Below are positions 282 through 62,564 of a stretch of DNA of 64,000 nt, in pieces. The number at the start of each line of letters is the position of its first letter. Positions within the stretch are counted from its first letter, which is position 1. The position numbers and the translations under genes are program-made. The notes under the pieces were generated by a model that saw only the letters and a program-made list of their open reading frames with translations, was not told where the DNA came from and did no database searches. The stretch is taken from IMG/VR virus record IMGVR_UViG_3300023174_000038, positions 284,702-348,701 of that record. One strand, written 5' to 3'.

Positions 282-1235
282 TTATTGAAAAATTTCTGGA
301 TGTGCTTTGCCAAATATCTTAATATACTTGCCAGCCATTACATCCGCTTCAGCTTCTATTGGACTACCAGGATAACTATCACCCGGCTTAATCATATTTA
401 ATTCACCCTGACGTACATGTGTTAATTCATGGAACACAGTACGTAATATATCTACTAAATTTCTATTAGCACAATAAACCCATACTTCACCCGTCTCTGG
501 ATTATGTCTTCCAGTATGATGACCTTCTTGTGCTTCATCACTATCATAACTAAACTCTATCTTTGGAGTATTTTGTAAATTCAACTTCTTACTTGTCCAA
601 GCAAGAAACTTCTGTACAATAGGATTACTATTCAAATCTTCTTGTTCAGCTTCTGTAATGTAGGGCTTTAATAACTCTGGATCATATCCTTTATGTCTAG
701 CAGAATCTCGTAATCGTCTTAACCCTTTAGCTTCAATTTGTCTTATTCTATCTCTAGACAAGTCAAACCTATCACCAATCTGTTGTAATGTCATGTCATA
801 CCAAAATCTTAAAATTAATACTTTTCGTTGGTCATCGGTTAATCTGTCTAAGCCGTTTTGGATAATTTGTTTAATACTATCATCTGTTGCAGGCTCCTCA
901 CCAGCTGGATCTTTATATGGTACTCGTTCTGCCCTATTATAAATATCGTTTGGATCATTTAATGTTGGCATTTTATTATGAGCTCCACGATATGTAGCAC
1001 CATCTGGGTTGTAATGTCGTCCTCCAACCTCATCTAGTTTATCTTTAATCCAATTGTCTGGAGTTTTATGATATTTTCTAACAAATAAATCATGCAATGC
1101 ATCACCAGTAATACGGTGTTTCTTTGCTATGTTTTTCATTAGCTTATCAATGGTATTATAGTCGTGTTTCTCTAAGCTAGGAAGTTTCTTAGCTAGTTCA
1201 ACTGCGGCTGATTCGTATAGTTCTATTGCTCTCAT
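282..1235 (-). CDS. Modular protein: capsid-targeting-like N-terminus, sigma-70 region 4 HTH, C-terminal HExxH metallopeptidase-like domain
   Basis: Likely start MRAIELYE at 1235 (TAAATA 5 nt upstream); LTDDQRKVLILRFWYDMTLQQIGDRFDLSRDRIRQIEAKGLRRLR is a typical sigma region 4; TVFHELTH..EAEA. Confidence 0.75.
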   Translation of the reverse strand: MRAIELYESAAVELAKKLPSLEKHDYNTIDKLMKNIAKKHRITGDALHDLFVRKYHKTPDNWIKDKLDEVGGRHYNPDGATYRGAHNKMPTLNDPNDIYNRAERVPYKDPAGEEPATDDSIKQIIQNGLDRLTDDQRKVLILRFWYDMTLQQIGDRFDLSRDRIRQIEAKGLRRLRDSARHKGYDPELLKPYITEAEQEDLNSNPIVQKFLAWTSKKLNLQNTPKIEFSYDSDEAQEGHHTGRHNPETGEVWVYCANRNLVDILRTVFHELTHVRQGELNMIKPGDSYPGSPIEAEADVMAGKYIKIFGKAHPEIFQ

Positions 1236-1269
1236 ATTAGTATTTATGCTCACTTTTGATTTCACAGTA

Positions 1270-2161: not shown

Positions 2162-2788
2162 TTATCCTACTACTGTACGATTCTTTACTTTACTAATTTC
2201 TACACTGAGTGGTGTATTAGTTGTTTTTGCTCTAAATATCTTATCAGTCTCACGTACACCTGGCTTAAGTTCAGATGCTACAATTAAGAATCTTGCTCTA
2301 TTCTTTCTCATGCCAATAAACTCACCTACTAATACTTGGTAATTAGGATAGTTAGGTGTTAAATCTATTTTAGGATTTTCTTGTTCATTGATGCTTTCTG
2401 ACACACCTTGTGCAATTGCTTCACGTGCCTGACGTTCATTTTCTTGTTTGAATCGTTGCATGGCTTGACTATCATTTATTTGTCCACGATCCAGTGCTTG
2501 CCAAATTGGCAAATCAAATGTGAGATATTTTTTTTGTACTGCTTGAGCATAACTAACTTCATTGCCACGACCTTGCCAATCAGGTTTATGCCCCCAAACA
2601 ACAGATACAGATTGACCATTTGGGAAGTTGATACGCATACGCTCTCCATAAAATACATATGTACTACCTTGCCATGTAAAAGCAAGATCGCCATTAACTG
2701 TTTTACCCATAGACCAGCCATGCTTTTTTAACAGTGAATCAACTGCGGCTTGATTATCATTCTCAATAATAAACTCTGTTGCTCTCAT
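2162..2788 (-). CDS. Putative head-packaged two-module protein
   Basis: Start MRATEFIIE resembles T4 IPII/IPIII CTS MKTYQEFIAE; internal junction QGVSE-SINE. Confidence 0.6.
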   Translation of the reverse strand: MRATEFIIENDNQAAVDSLLKKHGWSMGKTVNGDLAFTWQGSTYVFYGERMRINFPNGQSVSVVWGHKPDWQGRGNEVSYAQAVQKKYLTFDLPIWQALDRGQINDSQAMQRFKQENERQAREAIAQGVSESINEQENPKIDLTPNYPNYQVLVGEFIGMRKNRARFLIVASELKPGVRETDKIFRAKTTNTPLSVEISKVKNRTVVG

Positions 2789-3228
2789 TACTCACGTTCT
2801 CTTTTTAATGTTGAACGGATAAACCATGCTTTCTTACCGTATAGGTCTTGCAGTTCAGCCATGTAGTTAGCAATACCCTGTTGACGTTCATTTGTTGCTT
2901 CATCAAACATAGCAACAACAAGTTGACCTAATGTTTCACAATCTTGTAGTAACTCAATAAACATGAGTTCAGCTCTTGGAACTTTAGTTTGGTCTTGAAT
3001 GATACTTAATTCAGCATAACGTGTTAGACTGCCAGGAGTATAGTGACCTAATATTCTGATATATTCAGCTACAGGATCAATAGTAGCATTTACATCTTCA
3101 TACAATGTATTAAAGAATTCGTGATATTGTGGGAAGTTACTTCCCTCCACATTCCAATGAAAGTTTTGTGATTTGATAGCAAAGCTTTGTGTACTAGCTA
3201 ATAGTACTTTTAAATTATCTGATAACAT
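2788..3228 (-). CDS. dps: Dps / ferritin-like protein
   Basis: NFHWNVEGSNFPQYHEFF..Y..D.VAE ferroxidase motifs, 146 aa. Confidence 0.92.
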   Translation of the reverse strand: MLSDNLKVLLASTQSFAIKSQNFHWNVEGSNFPQYHEFFNTLYEDVNATIDPVAEYIRILGHYTPGSLTRYAELSIIQDQTKVPRAELMFIELLQDCETLGQLVVAMFDEATNERQQGIANYMAELQDLYGKKAWFIRSTLKRERE

Positions 3229-3237
3229 GATTACTCG

Positions 3238-6200
3238 TTAGTCTTTCTTTTTTGTATTAACATTGATGGCTTTACCACTACGGTCAGGATTAGGATCTTC
3301 TCTACGTTTACGTTGAGCGGCACTTGCACGACCCTTCTTACCTAGACTATGTGCTTTACTTTGTGGCAAGCATTTTGGTTTACCTTCTCCTGGTTCTCTA
3401 GCACATGGACCTTTAATCTTTCCTTTAGTATCCATGCGAACCCACTTTTCTTTATTAAACCAATCATGCAAACTTTCATCTGCCCTTTCAATACCTTCTA
3501 GTATAGAACTTTCATTCTTCTTCCCACCGTTACCCCAGTTACTTGCGCCTTTGTTGCGACACTTAACTAATGCACCACTGGCATAAGCACTTGGCCATAC
3601 TTTATAACGACTCTTTACTTTGTAGTAGCAAGCATCTTTCTTTTCGTTCATTAATTCTTCACTAACCATTTCGCCACCACAGTGTGGGCAACTTTCACTG
3701 TGTTGGTCTTCATTTGTTTTATTTTTAGCACAACTACCCGGAAAGCCTGCTTTAGTACCAGCAACTCTATGATAGCCGGACCAGCATTTCAATTCATCTA
3801 GTTGATCTTTTGAATGGTCACCGTGTGTTTCACACATACCGCAGTCTTCACAGACCATTTCCATTTCAATGCTTTCATTGTGCTTCTTCTTACCTGCACA
3901 ATGAGCCTTTTGACTAAAGCCTTTAGGATGACTACAGTTAATACTGCTCTTATATTTTTGACTCCAGCCTTCATCCATCTCTTGTTCATTAACGTAAATT
4001 GCGGCAGTTGTTTTATTTAAACTTTGTGGATCTTTTACGCCGGCTGCTACTTTAATTGCTTTAACTTTTTGTCTATAGTCATCAGCATATTCGGCTAATC
4101 TGTAGCCTAACATTTTACCAATTTCTTCAGGTGTAGCTGGTTTATCTTGCGGAGTATTTGCACCAAAAGTTGTGTCTAGTATCTTAGGCCATGCCATCCA
4201 GACCATATTTGATAACTCTTTATATGCTTTGCTTCTTAATTCTTTAATTTGAGCTTCAGCCTCATCTTCAGAAATACTAGGTGCGGGTGCAGGAATAGTT
4301 CCTTTGAATGCTTGAGCATTACCGGCACCGCCTAATCCTGCGGCAGCTAATGCGCCGGCGCCTGCTGCCTTACCCATGTTACCTAAAAACCCTCTACGGT
4401 TCATATCAGCTTCTTTCAAACCTGATTTTTTACGTATATACAATCTATCCTGTAATATTGAAATAGCATTGTCTAACTTTTTATTCAATGATTGATAGTT
4501 ATCTTTTGCACCATACTTAACGTGCATACTAGTATCAGTATCATTCTGCATTGCAGGAGTTAACAAACCTTTACGTTCTAATCTATCAACTAACTTATCT
4601 AATAGTTCTTGCTTTTGTATAGCATTATCTAATTGTGCTAATCTAGCTTTTAATACAGAATGTTTTTCACCAGGTTGTGCAACTGGTGTTGGTTGAAATT
4701 CTCTACGTAAACCTTGTTGTGCTTTTTGTACTGTGTTCTTTTCAAAATCTTGTCTCCAAGCTTCTATTTCAGCTTCACGCTGTTTCTCTATAGCTAATTT
4801 AGCTTGAATCAACGCATCCAATGATGTAGATTTTAATTGATCACCTAAGTTTTCATCAATTGATGCATAACGCTTATCATCTAAATCATCGTGGTAACTT
4901 CTTTGTGGTGGTTTTTTTAGCTCTATTGGTTTCTTAGATGAACCTCTATAACCACGTTCCCATGCCGCTGCACCTGCTGCCGCACTTTTACCATTTTTAA
5001 CAAAGTGATTAATGACTTCTTGTTTACTGTTAAATCTAGGTGATTCTATACCTTCATTTGTTGCCATTTCGCCATCATTACTATGACCATAATATTTGGC
5101 TACTTTTTGTAAATCAGCAGAATTTCTATCGTTAAGATAATCAGTTACTAAATCATGTATCTGATATCTTTGTTCTTGCGGGGCTGGTAATTCTATTTCA
5201 CCTTCACTTGCATCAGCAATATGTGCGGCGCCGGGACTGTCTAAGAACCATATCTCATCATCCTCATCCCATTCTAATCCCCATTTGTCTATTGTTGCAG
5301 TTAATACATAGTTGTTAGTAGTACCTACTACAAATTTGTTACCGCCTATATAACGTGAGCTATTTGGTTGACCGTAATCTTTTGGTCCTTTAGGGCCGCC
5401 AGTTTGTACAAATTCATTTATACCTTGACTGATACCAGATTTCTTTGTATCATTAGCAAATTGTTTTTTAGTTGCACGAACAATACCACTGAAACGTTTA
5501 TCACCACGCTTGTAATCGCCCTCTTTATCAGCTTTTCCTGCATCGGCAGCGGCCGCTGTTTTATATTGTGCTAGTTTCTCATTAGAGATTTCATCTAGTT
5601 GTGATTCAGGCATTAATCCGTGCTTTGTAATACGAGCATCTAATTCATCACGCTCTTTGGAATATTTTTGTATAAGTTCTTTATTACCTACTTGAATTGC
5701 TTGTCTAAGTTTTTCCTGAATGGCATCTGCTAAATCATAGTATTGATCCATTTTCATTCTAGTGGTATTATCTTCTTTTATTGTTTTACCTTGACCTAAT
5801 TGTTGTAAATCACTTGTTAATACATCTTGTGTAACACTACCCATACCTTTTGAAATCGTAATGCGAGAATGTTTACGATCCTTACTCATAGCAACTACTT
5901 TTGATGGTTGTCCAAAATACTTAACAGTATCACCTATCTGTATGTTCTTCATAGATACATTACCAACATTAACCGGTTTATCACCTGCAAAGTTACCTTG
6001 ATCTCCCCATGGGTCATCTAAACTTTCATTTGTACCAGTAGCTAATCTATCATGGTCACTATCACGTTGGGCTTTTTCTGCCGCTGCCTTCATAGCACGA
6101 CCTTTAGCAAAATCTTTTTCTTGTCTTATTAAACCATATGGATCATACTCATCATCATCTGTTTGTGTATGTCTACCACGTTTAGGATATGATGGTGCAT

Positions 6201-6282
6201 CTGCCCCGTATTCTCTTGCTGGATCATTATGTCCGTAAAAAGGATTGGATTCGTTTATTATACCTTTTAGAATATTGCTCAT
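3238..6282 (-). CDS. 1014-aa modular polyprotein, putative head cargo
   Basis: More than 15 short unrelated modules separated by x-x-E junctions (IINE, GTNE, QLDE, GINE, SIDE, GLKE, KHNE, LMNE, SILE); internal Tat-like peptide; Cys/Lys-rich C-terminal modules. Confidence 0.7.
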   Translation of the reverse strand: MSNILKGIINESNPFYGHNDPAREYGADAPSYPKRGRHTQTDDDEYDPYGLIRQEKDFAKGRAMKAAAEKAQRDSDHDRLATGTNESLDDPWGDQGNFAGDKPVNVGNVSMKNIQIGDTVKYFGQPSKVVAMSKDRKHSRITISKGMGSVTQDVLTSDLQQLGQGKTIKEDNTTRMKMDQYYDLADAIQEKLRQAIQVGNKELIQKYSKERDELDARITKHGLMPESQLDEISNEKLAQYKTAAAADAGKADKEGDYKRGDKRFSGIVRATKKQFANDTKKSGISQGINEFVQTGGPKGPKDYGQPNSSRYIGGNKFVVGTTNNYVLTATIDKWGLEWDEDDEIWFLDSPGAAHIADASEGEIELPAPQEQRYQIHDLVTDYLNDRNSADLQKVAKYYGHSNDGEMATNEGIESPRFNSKQEVINHFVKNGKSAAAGAAAWERGYRGSSKKPIELKKPPQRSYHDDLDDKRYASIDENLGDQLKSTSLDALIQAKLAIEKQREAEIEAWRQDFEKNTVQKAQQGLRREFQPTPVAQPGEKHSVLKARLAQLDNAIQKQELLDKLVDRLERKGLLTPAMQNDTDTSMHVKYGAKDNYQSLNKKLDNAISILQDRLYIRKKSGLKEADMNRRGFLGNMGKAAGAGALAAAGLGGAGNAQAFKGTIPAPAPSISEDEAEAQIKELRSKAYKELSNMVWMAWPKILDTTFGANTPQDKPATPEEIGKMLGYRLAEYADDYRQKVKAIKVAAGVKDPQSLNKTTAAIYVNEQEMDEGWSQKYKSSINCSHPKGFSQKAHCAGKKKHNESIEMEMVCEDCGMCETHGDHSKDQLDELKCWSGYHRVAGTKAGFPGSCAKNKTNEDQHSESCPHCGGEMVSEELMNEKKDACYYKVKSRYKVWPSAYASGALVKCRNKGASNWGNGGKKNESSILEGIERADESLHDWFNKEKWVRMDTKGKIKGPCAREPGEGKPKCLPQSKAHSLGKKGRASAAQRKRREDPNPDRSGKAINVNTKKKD

Positions 6283-7219: not shown

Positions 7220-8134
7220 TTAGATTTTGCCTGAGGGCTTTGCTGTTGGTGGGATACCTGCTCTACTAGTATTCCAATAGAATGCTTTTGCGTTCTTTTT
7301 GATACTGTCAGGCTTAACATCTACTGTTAATGCTGTACTAAAACGAGGGTCATTCTTCTGTTTTTTGCTTGGGATATAGCCCGAAGCTTCACCTACATAC
7401 ATTTCATCTACATTAGCGTACATATTGTCTAAACTTAAATGTTTGCTATGTAATTTGTCTCTCAAGTCATATAGTTTTGTAATATAGCCCCTGCTACGTA
7501 ATGCTTTATATGCTAAATTTTCAGGGCTAAACTCACCACCTTTATCTAATCCAGCTTGACGATATTGTTTAATCTTTTTTAATACTTTATTGACTTTACT
7601 TATTTTATCAGATTGTAATACTGTATCAATAATGTCTAATAGTTTTATATATTTTGCTTTAGTAGCTGTTTGGTCAAAGTTAGCTCTACGTTTTGCAGGC
7701 ATACGCAACCATTTATTATCTTTAACACTATACTCACCTAAGCTAGTGACAGGTTCTGCCGCATCTTGTATGTATAATTCTACCGGAATTCCATTGATAG
7801 TAATATCATGTGAATCATTGTATAAATCTTTTTTAGCCTTAAAGAATTCATGGTAAATGTCATCGTCAGGTAAATCCTTCATATTGACTAAGATATGTAA
7901 ATCTAAATCACTATGGTCTGTATAACTATAGGCTGCATTACTTCCGGATATAGTAATATCACGTACATCCAAATCATGTATACCCATCTCTTGTAAGAAA
8001 TCTTGTGCTATGTGTTTTAGTTGTAGTTCAACTTCAGGTTGAAGATGTTGTCCACGGAATAACTTTGGATTGAGGTTATCGTGAAATGTCACAGCATCTG
8101 ACATTTTGAATGAATGTAATTCTTTTAAGTCCAT
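7220..8134 (-). CDS. Pol-beta superfamily nucleotidyltransferase with C-terminal E-delimited module
   Basis: ITISGSNA.YSY...SDLDLH (GS + DxD) with downstream ELYIQD. Confidence 0.8.
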   Translation of the reverse strand: MDLKELHSFKMSDAVTFHDNLNPKLFRGQHLQPEVELQLKHIAQDFLQEMGIHDLDVRDITISGSNAAYSYTDHSDLDLHILVNMKDLPDDDIYHEFFKAKKDLYNDSHDITINGIPVELYIQDAAEPVTSLGEYSVKDNKWLRMPAKRRANFDQTATKAKYIKLLDIIDTVLQSDKISKVNKVLKKIKQYRQAGLDKGGEFSPENLAYKALRSRGYITKLYDLRDKLHSKHLSLDNMYANVDEMYVGEASGYIPSKKQKNDPRFSTALTVDVKPDSIKKNAKAFYWNTSRAGIPPTAKPSGKI

Positions 8135-9200: not shown

Positions 9201-10307
9201 TTATTTTTCCTCTAGATAATCCACACTTTCGGTAACCTTAACTGGATCTTCTTCTGCGTTTCTAAACTCAAAACGACTTTGTTGTAGATTGTACTTTTTA
9301 ATAGCTAATTCTAAATATCTATCAATTAAATTGTACGGTACTTTACGATTAACTAACAGAGGTGTTCTTCTTGGACCATCTAAGTAATATACATCTACAT
9401 ATTGTGGATGAAATACTTTAGCTGTTTTTTCTGCTTCTGCCAAACCTTGCTTTACTGTTTTATAAGCACTCTGTAGCACAAACATATATTCTTTATCTGT
9501 TATATCCGGTAGTATACCTTCAACTGCTGTATTGAAAAAGTCATCACCTGCTATCATATTCATAGCATGTATCATACCCAATTCATCAACATTTTTTTGT
9601 TTTGCTACTTGTATAGCAATTTCCAATAGTTTTCTTATTCTACGATTTCTATCATTCTCGCCACCACCATCACCCCTGTCGCTACTCGGCGGGACAAATT
9701 CATTTAATGATCCTTCTGACAATTCATTACCCATACCCATATCTAACATCTTAACAACATTAGCGGCTAGTTTAGGATTCTTTTGTGTTGCAGGATATAA
9801 ACTCATAACCATTGCTGTCTTACGCTTATCATTCAATGTAGGCCATGCATTACGTATCTCTGTGGCACTAGTGATACCAGGACCAAATTCTACTGTGGGT
9901 AAATAAGCCATGTAAGCATGTTTGCCAAATGGTTGTACATTTTCGCCTGTGTATGGTTGAAAGTATGCCGGACTACCGTCTTTCTTTGTACCACCTGGTT
10001 TAGGACTTTCATTACGATCCTTTTCACTACGAACAAAGATTACCACGTCTTGTTCTGGATTAAACTTATCAGTGATTTCTCTAGGTTGAAATGGACTTTT
10101 AACTTGTATAAAATGTCCAGGACTAACTCCTGCTACCTTAGCTAGTTTTTCTTTAATAGCAAAGGGGAAAGGTCTGGTCTTTGTATCATTGGTAGCGGCT
10201 ACATATACATCAGCACCGGGAAATGCTTTAAGTGCGGCTTGGTACAACGATGCATGACCAGCATGAAAAGGATGAAAGCCTCCTGGCATTATAACAACTG
10301 TACTCAT
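9201..10307 (-). CDS. HIGH-motif (cytidylyltransferase-like) nucleotidyltransferase plus C-terminal E-delimited modules
   Basis: Likely start MSTVVIMPGG; GGFHPFHAGH, ITSATEIR; junctions ELSE, SLNE, QGLAE. Confidence 0.8.
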   Translation of the reverse strand: MSTVVIMPGGFHPFHAGHASLYQAALKAFPGADVYVAATNDTKTRPFPFAIKEKLAKVAGVSPGHFIQVKSPFQPREITDKFNPEQDVVIFVRSEKDRNESPKPGGTKKDGSPAYFQPYTGENVQPFGKHAYMAYLPTVEFGPGITSATEIRNAWPTLNDKRKTAMVMSLYPATQKNPKLAANVVKMLDMGMGNELSEGSLNEFVPPSSDRGDGGGENDRNRRIRKLLEIAIQVAKQKNVDELGMIHAMNMIAGDDFFNTAVEGILPDITDKEYMFVLQSAYKTVKQGLAEAEKTAKVFHPQYVDVYYLDGPRRTPLLVNRKVPYNLIDRYLELAIKKYNLQQSRFEFRNAEEDPVKVTESVDYLEEK

Positions 10308-10308
10308 A

Positions 10309-10695
10309 TCAGTATGATAATTTAACAAAATTAACTACACCACCATTAAAGTCTACAACCTTTGCTCTCATATATACAAAATTACCATCTATATTTGTAT
10401 AGACAGAAGCATTACTAGCAATTTGTGGTGCAGAGTTAGCTGCCGCATTTGCATTAGCTTCTAATTCATATACTTTGAACCAATCAGTGCTACTTGGTGT
10501 TGTGGCTAAACTAGCTTCAATTGTGATATTACCTGTACAGTTTGTTACATTGATATTAACAGTTTGCAGTGAACGTGGTGTTATGATATATGATGCACCG
10601 GGTTGGCTATCACCAGTTACAGTATAGGGTGAATTATTGCCTGGATTAATATAGGTAGTTTGCGGCAATAGAATAAGAGTAGTTGTTTGGCTCAT
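10309..10695 (-). CDS. Hypothetical beta-rich protein, probably structural
   Basis: 128 aa Thr/Asn/Val-rich ORF, coupled to downstream gene. Confidence 0.55.
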   Translation of the reverse strand: MSQTTTLILLPQTTYINPGNNSPYTVTGDSQPGASYIITPRSLQTVNINVTNCTGNITIEASLATTPSSTDWFKVYELEANANAAANSAPQIASNASVYTNIDGNFVYMRAKVVDFNGGVVNFVKLSY

Positions 10696-32418: not shown

Positions 32419-32470
32419 ATCTATATCACCTTATTTAGTATTTATCGTTTTCCTATAAACACTATAGCCG

Positions 32471-40312: not shown

Positions 40313-40349
40313 GTTTTTCTCCTGTTATTAATATTTATCTATTTAAATA

Positions 40350-57479: not shown

Positions 57480-57523
57480 AAGTATAATTCTTTAGAAGAT
57501 TTATACTTATTTATCATTATTTC

Positions 57524-58210
57524 TTACAAGAACTGTTCATAATACTTCTCAACACGACTAAACCAAATATCACTATACTTGTCAAACTCAGTACCCTCTA
57601 GGATAAATTCCTGATATTCATTTGCGGCAGAACACATAAAAATAACACCTTTACGTATCTTTGTACCATGAACTTCATTATGTGCATTAGCATAAGCGGC
57701 TAATTGAACAAAATAATCTTCAATCCACTCACGTTTTTTAGGTTTATTTGTTTGTTTGTGATCCATGATAGCTTCATTACCGTCATGTATGCCTGCTAGG
57801 TCTGTTGTCCCTGCGTAAATTTTCGGATAATAGAGAGGAACTTCTGTGCCCCAATATTCATTGCATTTAACAAGACCTTGATTAATGATTGATTTGGCCA
57901 TTTGATGGCTTTGGATGCTATACGGATTGCTTCCGGGCTCATTGAGTACTCCTGTCTTAATGTAATCTTCTAGCCACTTGTGCATTCGTGTTCCACGACC
58001 TGCGGCTTCTGTTGTGATTTCTTGTGCTTTCTGAACACCAACTCGCTTTCGCCAGTTTTGCAATGCTTGTTTAGATTCTTCACTTTTAGTAGCATCTAGT
58101 ATTGTAGTTACACTAGGAAGTTTCTCGCCATCAGGTGTTGCATATTTACGTGACCCGTTTATTGTTTCTCTAAGTAAAGGAACATAATTATATTTGTTTG
58201 GAATGTACAT
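57524..58210 (-). CDS. PD-(D/E)xK exonuclease
   Basis: Likely start MYIPNKY; LPSVTTIL, RGTRMH, EVPL, YAGTTD, DHKQ, YFVQLAAYA. Confidence 0.85.
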   Translation of the reverse strand: MYIPNKYNYVPLLRETINGSRKYATPDGEKLPSVTTILDATKSEESKQALQNWRKRVGVQKAQEITTEAAGRGTRMHKWLEDYIKTGVLNEPGSNPYSIQSHQMAKSIINQGLVKCNEYWGTEVPLYYPKIYAGTTDLAGIHDGNEAIMDHKQTNKPKKREWIEDYFVQLAAYANAHNEVHGTKIRKGVIFMCSAANEYQEFILEGTEFDKYSDIWFSRVEKYYEQFL

Positions 58211-58254
58211 TAGACTATTATAATTTATTTTATAATTTAATGCTAGCATTTAGG

Positions 58255-58581
58255 TTAAACTCTAAAACTCTCTCCGCAACCGCATCGGTCACGCTCATTT
58301 GGGTTACTAAATTCAAACCCTTCATTTAACCCATTACGAACATAATCTACTATCATGTTCTTTAAGTATACATCATGTTTTTTATCTACTAGTACAATAA
58401 AATTTGGTTGTGCATAATTAATAGCAGATTCATCATAACTGTATTCATCAACATACTCTAATACATATGCCAAACCACTACATCCAGTGGTCTTGACGCC
58501 TATTCGTATTCCTAGACCCTTACCACGTTTTTTAATTATTTGTTGTATTTTATTGGAAGCTTTTTCGGTGATTGTAATCAT
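58255..58581 (-). CDS. iscA: IscA/HesB Fe-S cluster carrier
   Basis: GVKTTGCSGLAY and NPNERDRCGCGESF. Confidence 0.95.
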   Translation of the reverse strand: MITITEKASNKIQQIIKKRGKGLGIRIGVKTTGCSGLAYVLEYVDEYSYDESAINYAQPNFIVLVDKKHDVYLKNMIVDYVRNGLNEGFEFSNPNERDRCGCGESFRV

Positions 58582-58582
58582 C

Positions 58583-58906
58583 TTACTTCATTGCTTTGTG
58601 TGCCATTTGTTTGACAACTTTTTTACTATCTTCTTCTTCTGGTTCAACTGGAGTTTCTTGACCTTTAAATATAACCTTATCACCTTGAATATTTGATATT
58701 TTATTCTTCAATGGTGGCTTTTTAATCATATCATACAAATCTTGTTTTGCTAGTATGATATCATTATCTTTATAATATTGTAATAATTCATCAACTGACC
58801 AATCCGAATGTTGGTCACCACTATCAATTTCACTAGTGAGCTGACTTGTGACAGCTACTAATCTAACTAATAGTGGATTCGGATTTGATAGTTCAAATAA
58901 ACGCAT
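58583..58906 (-). CDS. Putative head-associated protein, CTS-like start
   Basis: MRLFELS start, 107 aa. Confidence 0.55.
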   Translation of the reverse strand: MRLFELSNPNPLLVRLVAVTSQLTSEIDSGDQHSDWSVDELLQYYKDNDIILAKQDLYDMIKKPPLKNKISNIQGDKVIFKGQETPVEPEEEDSKKVVKQMAHKAMK

Positions 58907-59631
58907 TATCTCTTTAAACGGCCAGCACCACCAACGGGTACTTCTTCGTCTGGTTCTTCAACGGAAATATCATCGTCAACACTGAAATCATCTTCACCGT
59001 CACCAGCTAAATCGCCAGACATATCTAAATCAGCAGATACATCTTCATCACCAAATGCATCATCTGCAGGGTTACCACCCATCATGTCACCACCTTGGCC
59101 AGTGATACCATTTAAAGCAGATTGCATTGTGCCTTTGCTTTGTGTTAATGCGGCTTGTACAGAAGTTAATGCTTCAGTAACTTGTTGGTTGAAAGTTTCA
59201 CTTTCATTTACACCAATCTCGCTTTGAACACCTGATGTTAATGCCGGTAATTCTTTTACTAACATATCAGATACTTCTTCAACCATCTTTTGTATTTGGT
59301 CGACCATGTCTTGGGCGGCAAGAACAACTTGTGACTTCTCAACTTCTTCGTTCTCTACCATAATACGAGTTCTAGGTAGTGATTGCAAATAGCTAAAATG
59401 GTCAGCTAATGCTTGTTCCATAAACACTAGTTTCATGTATGATGGACTAGTTTGGCTTTGGTAAAATTCAGTAGATGATTTAGTTTCATTAATCAATCCG
59501 CGAACTTTACTAAGCATAGACTTAGTTTCCGTAACGGTCATTCTCTTTGTATTGAACGGAAGAGAATAGTGTTCATTCAACGCCTGTTTAGCAGTTGATA
59601 TTTTTTTGTTGTCAAATTCAGTTAGTTTCAT
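58906..59631 (-). CDS. Putative prohead core/scaffold-like protein
   Basis: MKLTEF start, ALNE, LINE, MVENEE junctions, helical body, very acidic tail. Confidence 0.55.
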   Translation of the reverse strand: MKLTEFDNKKISTAKQALNEHYSLPFNTKRMTVTETKSMLSKVRGLINETKSSTEFYQSQTSPSYMKLVFMEQALADHFSYLQSLPRTRIMVENEEVEKSQVVLAAQDMVDQIQKMVEEVSDMLVKELPALTSGVQSEIGVNESETFNQQVTEALTSVQAALTQSKGTMQSALNGITGQGGDMMGGNPADDAFGDEDVSADLDMSGDLAGDGEDDFSVDDDISVEEPDEEVPVGGAGRLKR

Positions 59632-59680
59632 AGTTATATTCCAAGACTAATATAAAGTATTTATCTTTTTTGTTTTATTG

Positions 59681-61135: not shown

Positions 61136-62284
61136 TTATCTTCTGGCGAGATTTTGACGACTAAATCCCATTCTATCTACAAATTTTAAGCCATTTGATA
61201 CAAAACCTTCATGCGTTTCGGTTCCGTCTTCTAAATATCCTTTAACAGGACTAACTTCAGCGGCTTTATTCAATTGATTAACCACTGACATTTTTAGTTT
61301 ATACATCTCAATCCATATAGTAAAAGCACCAACTAATCCAGCTTCATTGGCTTGTAAATGCTCAACTATCTTCGCTTTCATTTTATCAGTCATTGGTCTA
61401 TTCTGTACAAAATCCATAAACCCAGCAAGTAGATTGTTCAAATCACCTGCAACAATCTTCTTGTTAATATATACGGTAAACAATTGATTAAATGTATTAC
61501 GTGCTTGTGGTGCACTATTCATTAATTGGTCTACTGCAGGACCATATTTCTTAACTGCATTCTGTGCATTCTTTACTAATGCAGTATCTATTTTAAGCTT
61601 AGGTGCTGTTGGCATAGCACTAGGAACAATTGCAACATCACTATTATTCTTTAGTTGTCCTATATTACCATTCAATGTAACTGCTTCATCAGTGGTCATT
61701 GCATTAGGATCAATATACTGATGTACTGCAATACCAGCACGTTTACCACCCATTAATTTACCAATTGGACTATTAACTTCTACTTTGTAAGTAATACCAT
61801 TGGGATTAGCTTTGAAAACATAGTTACCGTTTTGGTCGTTTAATGGTTGATGAAATAACAAATCACCCCAATAATAACCCTTAGCACCTTTGCTAGCTTT
61901 TTCTAACCCAGGCCATATCTCATTGATAATAGGCCATAAACTATCACGCTCTACCCCACGTGCTTGGTCATATTGAACAAATTGTTCTGGACTGAATACT
62001 TGACGTCCTGTCCCGTCTTTCTTATTGAACATATGTTTGTCCATAATACTAAACTTACCTGAACTATTACGTCCAAATATCAATGCAGGATATCCATCCC
62101 ATTTGATTGTAACTGTTGCTGGATTCTTTACTGTAGCAATAGTAGCTTGTATGGCACGACTAGCACCTTCACTTCCACCTAAAAATATTAAATCTTCTGG
62201 ATGGTCTAAATGACCTTTATCTTCATTTATAGATAGTTTGTCAATTTTAGATTTAAGTAATGCTAATGCTTCCGATAAATTCAT
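61136..62284 (-). CDS. Covalent nucleotidyltransferase (ligase-like) protein with E-terminated propeptide
   Basis: KWDG (motif I), WGDLLF (III), EGFV (IV), KFVDR (V); N-terminal MNLSE..SINE then DKGHLDHPED. Confidence 0.65.
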   Translation of the reverse strand: MNLSEALALLKSKIDKLSINEDKGHLDHPEDLIFLGGSEGASRAIQATIATVKNPATVTIKWDGYPALIFGRNSSGKFSIMDKHMFNKKDGTGRQVFSPEQFVQYDQARGVERDSLWPIINEIWPGLEKASKGAKGYYWGDLLFHQPLNDQNGNYVFKANPNGITYKVEVNSPIGKLMGGKRAGIAVHQYIDPNAMTTDEAVTLNGNIGQLKNNSDVAIVPSAMPTAPKLKIDTALVKNAQNAVKKYGPAVDQLMNSAPQARNTFNQLFTVYINKKIVAGDLNNLLAGFMDFVQNRPMTDKMKAKIVEHLQANEAGLVGAFTIWIEMYKLKMSVVNQLNKAAEVSPVKGYLEDGTETHEGFVSNGLKFVDRMGFSRQNLARR

Positions 62285-62535
62285 AACTGCTCTTTGTCGC
62301 TATTTTTCTTTATTGATTTAGAAAACTTTCCTTGGTCACGGGATTTAATTGCACCCAGCAATTTTCTCTCTAATATTTCTGCTTGCTCTTTAGGATAATT
62401 CCTATTAATCATCTCTAATAGATTAATAGCACTAGTAATGATGTTGTGGGCTCTACTCTCAATAACATGACTTGTATCACGGTTATTGCCAATAGCTTCC
62501 AATTCCTGAAGCAGGCTGCGAGTTTGTTTTTGCAT
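62281..62535 (-). CDS. Hypothetical protein
   Basis: 84 aa, ATGA-coupled. Confidence 0.6.
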   Translation of the reverse strand: MQKQTRSLLQELEAIGNNRDTSHVIESRAHNIITSAINLLEMINRNYPKEQAEILERKLLGAIKSRDQGKFSKSIKKNSDKEQL

Positions 62536-62564
62536 AATAGTTTCCTAATAGTATTTATCTACTT

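Follow-up and report, generated by a model that had tools for sequence, protein, structure and literature searches.

What kind of enzyme is encoded by a phage gene whose product displays the motifs of a polynucleotide ligase in their usual order, and why does that product begin with what appears to be a cleavable leader? The question is raised by a gene on the minus strand, at positions 61136..62284, of a stretch of 64,000 nucleotides from the IMG/VR virus record IMGVR_UViG_3300023174_000038 (record positions 284,702-348,701); this entire stretch is referred to here as the window, and coordinates refer to it unless they are marked 'genome'. The 348.7-kb record is the genome of a T4-like jumbo phage that recurs in metagenomes from lakes and fresh water across many studies; an independent study contains contigs identical to it. 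On the basis of its open reading frame (ORF) and translation, its match to the Pfam family DUF6267 (PF19782), a structural model and the neighbours of that model, the 382-residue product was assigned to the ligase superfamily of nucleotidyltransferases. The explanation that we favour, with somewhat better than even confidence, is that of a ligase-type nucleotidyltransferase that is made late, targeted to the capsid, processed by a gp21-type protease and injected, and that forms a module with an adenylyltransferase of the HIGH-motif type. An earlier note, prepared from the letters of the window alone, had described a ligase-like enzyme behind a propeptide and had interpreted it as a virion-delivered, RNA ligase-like repair or end-modifying enzyme; as an observation that description is confirmed, and its interpretation is partly supported, namely as to the fold and the leader, with a preference for RNA, a part in repair or against host defences and presence in the virion as proposals.

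The DUF6267 family and its conserved motifs

The protein matches DUF6267 across residues 25-380 with a score of 136.9 bits (against a gathering cut-off of 27), the same family is matched by all 57 homologues aligned with it, and a PHROGs search places it in a family of unknown function. A search of NCBIfam with the protein gave no match, and a full-text search of the literature found no publication that names DUF6267 or describes its function. An exhaustive, profile-free search of metagenomes yielded 905 cluster representatives of the family, and all representatives with a known taxonomy are viral. Its cultured relatives, approximately 25-27% identical to the target, are T4-like cyanophages, the Pelagibacter phage HTVC008M and the Methylophilales phage Melnitz. 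DUF6267 corresponds to T4-GC71, a cluster annotated as hypothetical and present in every T4-like cyanophage (16 of 16) of the comparison made by Sullivan et al. (2010); the analysis described here provides the first functional lead for a family so uniformly retained in that comparison. Contigs from RNA libraries, derived from relatives that are about 90% identical, cover parts of the gene, although such contigs are no proof of transcription.

Across the 57-sequence alignment, in which mean column identity is 29%, the invariant residues are H28, D31, K61, D63, G64, G71, D141, Y166, K331, E359, G360, K367 and R371. The translation bears out the claim of the earlier note that KWDG, GDLLF, EGFV and KFVDR follow one another in ligase order (all of these features lie on the minus strand). 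In the model, motif I, KWDG (residues 61-64; 62093..62104), occupies the last part of a strand and the loop after it, an arrangement shared with ligases; K61, D63 and G64 are invariant, and K61 is the predicted nucleotidyl-accepting residue, which gives the superfamily assignment a defined candidate for the catalytic lysine. It is followed by a motif III-like strand, GDLLF (residues 140-144; 61853..61867), in which the invariant D141 replaces the usual glutamate, and by a motif IIIa-like strand, YVFKANPNG (61796..61822), of which F157, P161 and N162 are at least 90% conserved. Model secondary structure and alignment then delimit an all-helical insert of 109 residues (234-342; 61259..61585) with an isoelectric point (pI) of 9.7, which separates the N-terminal part of the nucleotidyltransferase fold from motifs IV and V and holds N274 (at least 90% conserved) as well as K331. 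Motif IV is EGFV (residues 359-362; 61199..61210), with E359 and G360 invariant, and the motif V-like element is KFVDR (residues 367-371; 61172..61186), in which K367 and R371 form a KxxxR pattern that lacks the second lysine found in a canonical KxK. Ahead of all of these, at the start of the N-terminal helix, lies HPED (62192..62203), a motif specific to the DUF6267 family in which H28 and D31 are invariant and E30 is at least 90% conserved.

The invariance of K61, D63, G64, D141, E359, G360 and K367 across very divergent homologues would be hard to explain without catalysis. It renders very improbable the idea that catalysis has been lost and that the protein, its ligase-like fold retained, serves inside the head or in association with the scaffold, an idea that would otherwise accord with a leader of the capsid-targeting type and with the position of the gene beside a homologue of a virion-protein gene (both described below).

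A ligase-type fold of unusual build

An AlphaFold2 model built with the family alignment has a predicted local distance difference test score (pLDDT) of 94.6 and a predicted template modelling score (pTM) of 0.89, with residues 16-22 as its only disordered segment. The earlier note had claimed a covalent nucleotidyltransferase, and the predicted fold is indeed ligase-type: all of the 25 best structural neighbours in an exhaustive structure search are ligases and the motif lysine is invariant. The sole non-ligase among the structural neighbours is the m3G-cap-binding domain of snurportin, at rank 44, and no capping enzyme is present among the matches listed. The aligned ranges place K61 and K367 at the distances from the matched chain ends that are expected for motifs I and V. 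A Foldseek search of the PDB included RNA ligases among its rows, every one of which had E > 0.1, and an atlas structure search returned DUF6267 clusters alone. The candidate motifs III, IIIa, IV and V keep their order (with D141, F157, E359-G360 and K367 counted as invariant), but depart in composition, with aspartate rather than glutamate in III and KFVDR in V.

A search of PDB sequences, with the target protein and with the family profile, produced no ligase match, and the Pfam ligase families gave no significant match to any of 57 members (the best being RNA_lig_T4_1, at E 0.15 in one of the 57). Alignment of the family profile by hhalign with three single sequences (T4 Rnl2, T4 Rnl1 and the DNA ligase of this phage) and with an Rnl2 profile returned probabilities below 1%; the last profile is a shallow one, consisting of 18 sequences of at least 56% identity drawn from the closest 120 matches. 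Because all of these sequence-profile tests against ligase families failed, membership in the superfamily rests on structure and motifs. Judged by the predicted model, the assignment of the target as a divergent covalent (lysine-NMP, where NMP is nucleoside monophosphate) nucleotidyltransferase of the DNA/RNA ligase superfamily is well supported.

The build of this enzyme is unusual, combining a basic helical insert before motifs IV and V, an aspartate in motif III, KxxxR in motif V and an invariant HxED helix ahead of the fold. The model has no C-terminal OB-fold domain with motif VI, its only extra domain being all-helical, and no N-terminal DNA-binding or DNA-encircling domain; the earlier remark that no OB domain could be recognised therefore holds, as the chain stops 11 residues after KFVDR and contains the helical insert instead. 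The target carries none of the appended domains, and matches none of the family hidden Markov models, of Rnl1, Rnl2, Rnl3 and Rnl5. The missing nucleic-acid clamp domain, together with the departure of motif V from the ligase pattern, would suit a lysine-adenylylating enzyme that is not a ligase at all, but that transfers AMP or another NMP to a protein or small molecule, or synthesises dinucleotides, as part of an NAD-centred chemistry shared with an NMNAT-like partner and, in some relatives, with an ADP-ribosyltransferase. Such an enzyme appears distinctly improbable, given that the structural neighbours other than the snurportin domain are polynucleotide ligases, and that the mature protein (pI 9.2) and its insert are both basic, as expected of a nucleic-acid binder.

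A putative T4-type leader and its cleavage motif

In phage T4, the gp21 protease cleaves after L/I-X-E (PMC9026906), and a 10-residue capsid-targeting sequence (CTS), MKTYQEFIAE, sends proteins into the head (PMC9026906, PMC8442874). The target opens with a comparable segment, MNLSEALALLKSKIDKLSINE, which is encoded at 62222..62284 on the minus strand and which was delimited, from pLDDT, the L/I-x-E motif and the enrichment described below, as a putative capsid-targeting propeptide with a predicted cut after E21. A helix spans residues 3-17 of this segment, and a disordered linker, with pLDDT below 50 at residues 16-22, leads from it to the terminal I-N-E. The earlier note had counted 22 residues ending in SINE; the ending stands (LSINE, then D), and the length is corrected to 21. 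The leader is truly encoded, because the next in-frame methionine, M84, lies beyond the conserved core. The predicted mature form would comprise residues 22-382 (approximately 39.8 kDa, pI 9.2) and begin with DKGHL.

Comparison across the family shows that the cleavage motif is enriched at this position, ahead of the domain. E21 is at least 90% conserved in the 57 homologues, and among 138 representatives [LI]xE ends six to eight residues ahead of the invariant histidine in 14-22% of sequences per position, as compared with a background of 0.78% (an approximately 25-fold enrichment). The same motif lies 3-12 residues from that histidine in 109 of the 138, and the broader form [LIVMF]xE is found within 20 residues of it in 135; it is kept ahead of the domain even when the domain starts 150-790 residues into a fusion protein. 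Many orthologues begin with MRAIEFLTEA, MRAQEFLTEE or MKIIELLTEA, which resemble the T4 CTS. A large subgroup of DUF6267 proteins (P0151, P0156, P0162, P0172, P0180, P0263 and others) has an extra N-terminal domain of approximately 250-300 residues that ends in a conserved ARLRDRIVNQGM...hIE just ahead of the ligase-like domain; this extra domain has no Pfam match and no homologue in this genome.

The genome also encodes the machinery that such a leader would require, in the form of a gp21-gp22-gp23 module. It comprises a gp21-type protease with a Peptidase_S77 match (genome 98606-99037), an LxE-rich scaffold protein (gp22), and a gp23 homologue that carries LLAE|SSAG in alignment with the T4 gp23 cleavage site FLTE65|AE. 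Considered together, the L/I-x-E motif, the disordered linker, the family-wide conservation and the presence of this protease make the 'E-terminated propeptide' of the earlier note a credible leader of the T4 type, and a propeptide or capsid-targeting function for it is well supported by comparative evidence, though unproven.

The leader does not appear to be unique within this phage. The start M[KRN]xx[ED][FLIMA] occurs in 13 of 355 ORFs, where a rough estimate from typical residue frequencies would predict about two, and several of the 13 share the form MRxxEFhTE. At least nine other ORFs start with leaders that resemble the T4 CTS. Near-identical leaders were noted on unrelated ORFs at 2162-2788, 282-1235, 58583-58906 and 58906-59631 (minus strand) of the window and at genome 16385-17154, 235931-237007 and 261485-264180; these are MRATEFIIE, MRAIELYES, MRLFEL, MKLTEF, MRAIEFVTE, MRAKEFITE and MRFTEIITE. 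Such repetition suggests a large set of capsid-loaded cargo proteins.

Gene order, late-promoter-like boxes and a possible replicative role

The start codon of the target overlaps the TGA of an upstream ORF (as ATGA), to which it is translationally coupled. That ORF (62281..62535, minus strand; phrog_11854, E 6e-17) encodes a basic protein of 84 residues (pI 9.6) that is 47% identical to a protein of phage PA5oct and its relatives, the PA5oct protein being annotated as 'virion structural protein'. Seventeen nucleotides upstream of it is a T4-type late-promoter-like box, ATAAATA (62552..62558, minus strand), which would drive a two-gene unit composed of the 84-residue ORF and the target. ATAAATA is found 17-30 nucleotides upstream of at least ten further gene starts in the window, and of at least 11 in all, with further boxes on the minus strand at 59658-59664, 57508-57514, 40332-40338 and 32439-32445; the full TATAAATA is under-represented overall (five found, about 14 expected). 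Such a pattern would fit NATAAATA as the form of a T4-like late promoter.

A different aspect of gene order points towards replication. Here, and in S-PM2, S-SM1, P-TIM40, HTVC008M and Melnitz (that is, in every genome examined), the gene lies directly downstream of a gp41-type helicase. Such a location would be natural for a cytoplasmic DNA ligase of replication and repair that is not delivered by the virion, and that would be the nick-sealing enzyme 'missing' from T4-like cyanophages and pelagiphages; the N-terminal segment would then be part of the fold or a regulatory peptide. In keeping with that idea, S-PM2 and HTVC008M are without a Pfam-detectable ATP- or NAD-dependent DNA ligase, whereas T4 has one, and DUF6267 is found in every one of the 16 cyanophages. 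The present phage, however, already encodes a canonical ATP-dependent DNA ligase (PF01068; genome ~247.5-248.9 kb), and the target has neither an OB nor a DNA-encircling domain. The retention of a leader with L/I-x-E in 109-135 of 138 representatives and inside fusions, the late-promoter-like box and the coupling to a homologue of a virion gene likewise argue against a purely replicative enzyme, as do fusions (described below) with ART-PolyVal; this domain takes its name from the polyvalent proteins in which it occurs, and for such proteins packaging in the virion and injection are predicted. On balance a replicative ligase is considered a minority explanation, to be taken seriously but rather unlikely.

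Neither Rnl1 nor Rnl2 was found in this phage genome. Between the LxE...HxED segment of DUF6267 and the N-terminus (KLNESDSRLHKEDIIL) of the canonical DNA ligase encoded by this phage there is a weak resemblance, which is not significant (hhalign E 0.17).

A recurrent partner enzyme

Half of the representatives surveyed (75 of 150) are at least 480 residues long, and at least 23 of these 75 consist of DUF6267 fused to a nucleotidyltransferase with a HIGH motif (in signatures such as GGFHPFHLGH and GRMNPPTLGH). A tblastn search of the genome with the fusion partners identified an ORF on the minus strand at 9201..10328 (likely start ATG 10307), with up to 75% identity, which encodes an unlinked NadD/NadM-like HIGH adenylyltransferase (GGFHPFHAGH). 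It is matched by the Pfam family CTP_transf_like and by profiles of PPAT and NMNAT, and the best fold neighbours of its confidently folded N-terminal 190 residues are NadD and NadM. The genes for the target and this partner are 51 kb apart in this phage; in cyanophages the corresponding clusters, T4-GC71 and T4-GC190, are both present in 16 of 16 genomes, 13 of which have them side by side. The C-terminal 170 residues of the partner are poorly modelled and it has no N-terminal leader; beyond the catalytic domain, this protein and its relatives share a conserved L-x-E-A.

The earlier note had nominated a Pol-beta nucleotidyltransferase as a possible collaborator. The gene in question (7220..8134, minus strand; GS...DLD, a weak NTP_transf_7 match) does have a homologue among the fusions, as the C-terminal domain of P0157 (DUF6267, HIGH nucleotidyltransferase and Pol-beta-like domain; tblastn 38% identity, E 5e-43), but this is one of 22 fusions compared, and it is the NadD/NadM-like enzyme that recurs. 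Other domains fused to DUF6267 are ART-PolyVal, Sigma70_r4, NT5C, DUF5661 and Sod_Cu, and a single fusion unites the HIGH nucleotidyltransferase, DUF6267 and ART-PolyVal. That fusion, and the tight link to a NadD/NadM-like adenylyltransferase in general, speak for the NAD-centred, non-ligase chemistry considered above; the domains of polyvalent proteins are often functionally independent, however, and their fusion need not imply a shared chemistry. That DUF6267 is so constantly associated with an NMNAT-like enzyme suggests a side of phage nucleotide or NAD biochemistry that is still unexplored.

An ORF at 282-1265 (minus strand) combines Sigma-70 region 4 with a C-terminal HELTH (HExxH-like) motif. 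A homologue of it forms the C-terminal portion of P0126, a polyvalent protein that contains DUF6267 and ART-PolyVal as well.

Packaging evidence from cyanophage virions

Virion proteomics of cyanophages bears on packaging in two directions. In S-SM1 virions, Sullivan et al. (2010) found the product of T4-GC190; this is the 'CTP-transferase' gene downstream of DUF6267 (T4-GC71), and not DUF6267 itself. The HIGH nucleotidyltransferase was similarly detected in S-CREM2 virions (as gp154). Two observations weigh against capsid delivery of the target, and favour a replicative ligase: the DUF6267 protein was not detected by virion proteomics of S-SM1 or S-CREM2 (in the latter it is gp87, which is not listed), and the cyanophage DUF6267 proteins examined begin just before HxED and have no leader. 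The cyanophage partner proteins, by comparison, open with the leaders MKKFSAFLNE|A, MRFLDFIKE|A and MKNFSSFLTE|A, and the detection of the partner rather than DUF6267 in those virions is consistent with a leader on the former and none on the latter. A simple rule of one leader per module, on DUF6267 or on its partner but never on both, was considered and rejected, as both proteins have a leader in Melnitz and in HTVC008M. Packaging of the target would accordingly be predicted from its own conserved leader, and not from proteomics.

Proposed mechanism and significance

In the mechanism that we favour, late synthesis would yield a precursor whose T4-type capsid-targeting leader carries it into the prohead, and there the gp21-like protease of the phage would cut between E21 and the next residue (L-S-I-N-E|D). 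The mature enzyme, basic and of about 40 kDa, would be ejected together with the DNA; in the cell, K61 would be adenylylated from ATP or NAD+, and the AMP would be moved to the 5'-phosphate end of a polynucleotide, which would then be sealed or left capped. The enzyme would act in a conserved functional module with the NadD/NadM-like HIGH adenylyltransferase.

A more speculative extension, which we advance only tentatively, is that DUF6267 and the NadD/NadM-like enzyme constitute a new two-enzyme, NAD-linked module for joining or adenylylating polynucleotide ends. This would supply T4-like cyanophages and pelagiphages with their 'missing ligase', and the ligase-like enzyme might be charged from NAD+ that its partner produces in situ; in many lineages, this phage among them, it would be loaded into the capsid and injected, so as to act, within seconds of the start of infection, on the entering genome or on RNA of the host.

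A full-text search of the literature found no publication linking an RNA ligase with phage ejection proteins. If capsid delivery is correct, the target would be, as far as the literature searched shows, the first known case of a ligase-type enzyme injected along with phage DNA, and the reach of the T4 capsid-targeting system would widen to take in a large group of cargo enzymes in phages of aquatic habitats. If cyanophages instead use it as their replicative ligase, it would close a gap that has long been noted in the replication module of these phages.

Other genes of the window and genome

The genome displays two affinities: the 84-residue upstream protein is related to those of the PA5oct-type, Phosso and SCTP-2 jumbo phages, and DUF6267 to that of marine T4-like phages. 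A protein of 1014 residues (3238-6282, minus strand) has a leader-like start, GIINE|S, long low-complexity and coiled regions and a basic, cysteine-rich C-terminus; a weak match to DUF5872 was the only one found, and it is possibly a large ejected protein. Also on the minus strand are genes for a DNA/RNA non-specific endonuclease with a signal-peptide-like N-terminus (1339-2151), a ferritin/Dps-like protein (2788-3228), a HesB/IscA-type Fe-S assembly protein (58255-58581) and a PD-(D/E)XK exonuclease (57524-58249).

Comparison with known systems

The ATP-dependent RNA ligases that likewise lack an OB domain (T4 Rnl2 and TbREL1, Naegleria Rnl5, and T4 Rnl1 and Trl1) have no sequence or profile similarity to DUF6267 that could be found. 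Their additional domains are appended at an end, whereas the 109-residue helical domain of DUF6267 is internal, before motifs IV and V; DUF6267 further differs in having aspartate for glutamate in motif III, KxxxR for KxK and the invariant HxED helix, and the target has a capsid-targeting leader. Relative to the ATP-dependent DNA ligases (T4 gp30, the T7 and Chlorella virus enzymes, Pmar-Lig and the PF01068 ligase of the phage itself), DUF6267 is without an OB domain and motif VI and without an N-terminal DNA-binding domain, and in this genome it coexists with a canonical member of that group.

The polyvalent proteins described by Iyer et al. (2017) provide a second point of reference, as DUF6267 homologues are embedded in multi-domain proteins of 600-1300 residues with ART-PolyVal, Sigma70_r4, NT5C, Pol-beta nucleotidyltransferase and Sod_Cu domains, some of whose junctions carry LxE; the protein of the window, in contrast, is a single domain. 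A search for the relevant terms in that paper located no mention of a ligase-fold domain.

The cyanophage pair T4-GC71 and T4-GC190, the latter annotated as 'cytidylyltransferase' and listed as a cyanophage core gene, comprises the same two genes, which are there usually adjacent and downstream of gp41; in cyanophages the leader is on GC190 and not on GC71, whereas here it is on DUF6267. A functional precedent is T4 Alt, an enzyme that is delivered with the DNA after the prohead protease has removed a propeptide ending in L/I-x-E (PMC9026906). The target resembles Alt and the internal proteins IPI-III in its N-terminal propeptide ending in L/I-x-E, and orthologue leaders resemble MKTYQEFIAE; it differs in that its cargo is ligase-like, rather than an ADP-ribosyltransferase or an anti-restriction protein, and in that its processing and packaging are predicted from sequence.
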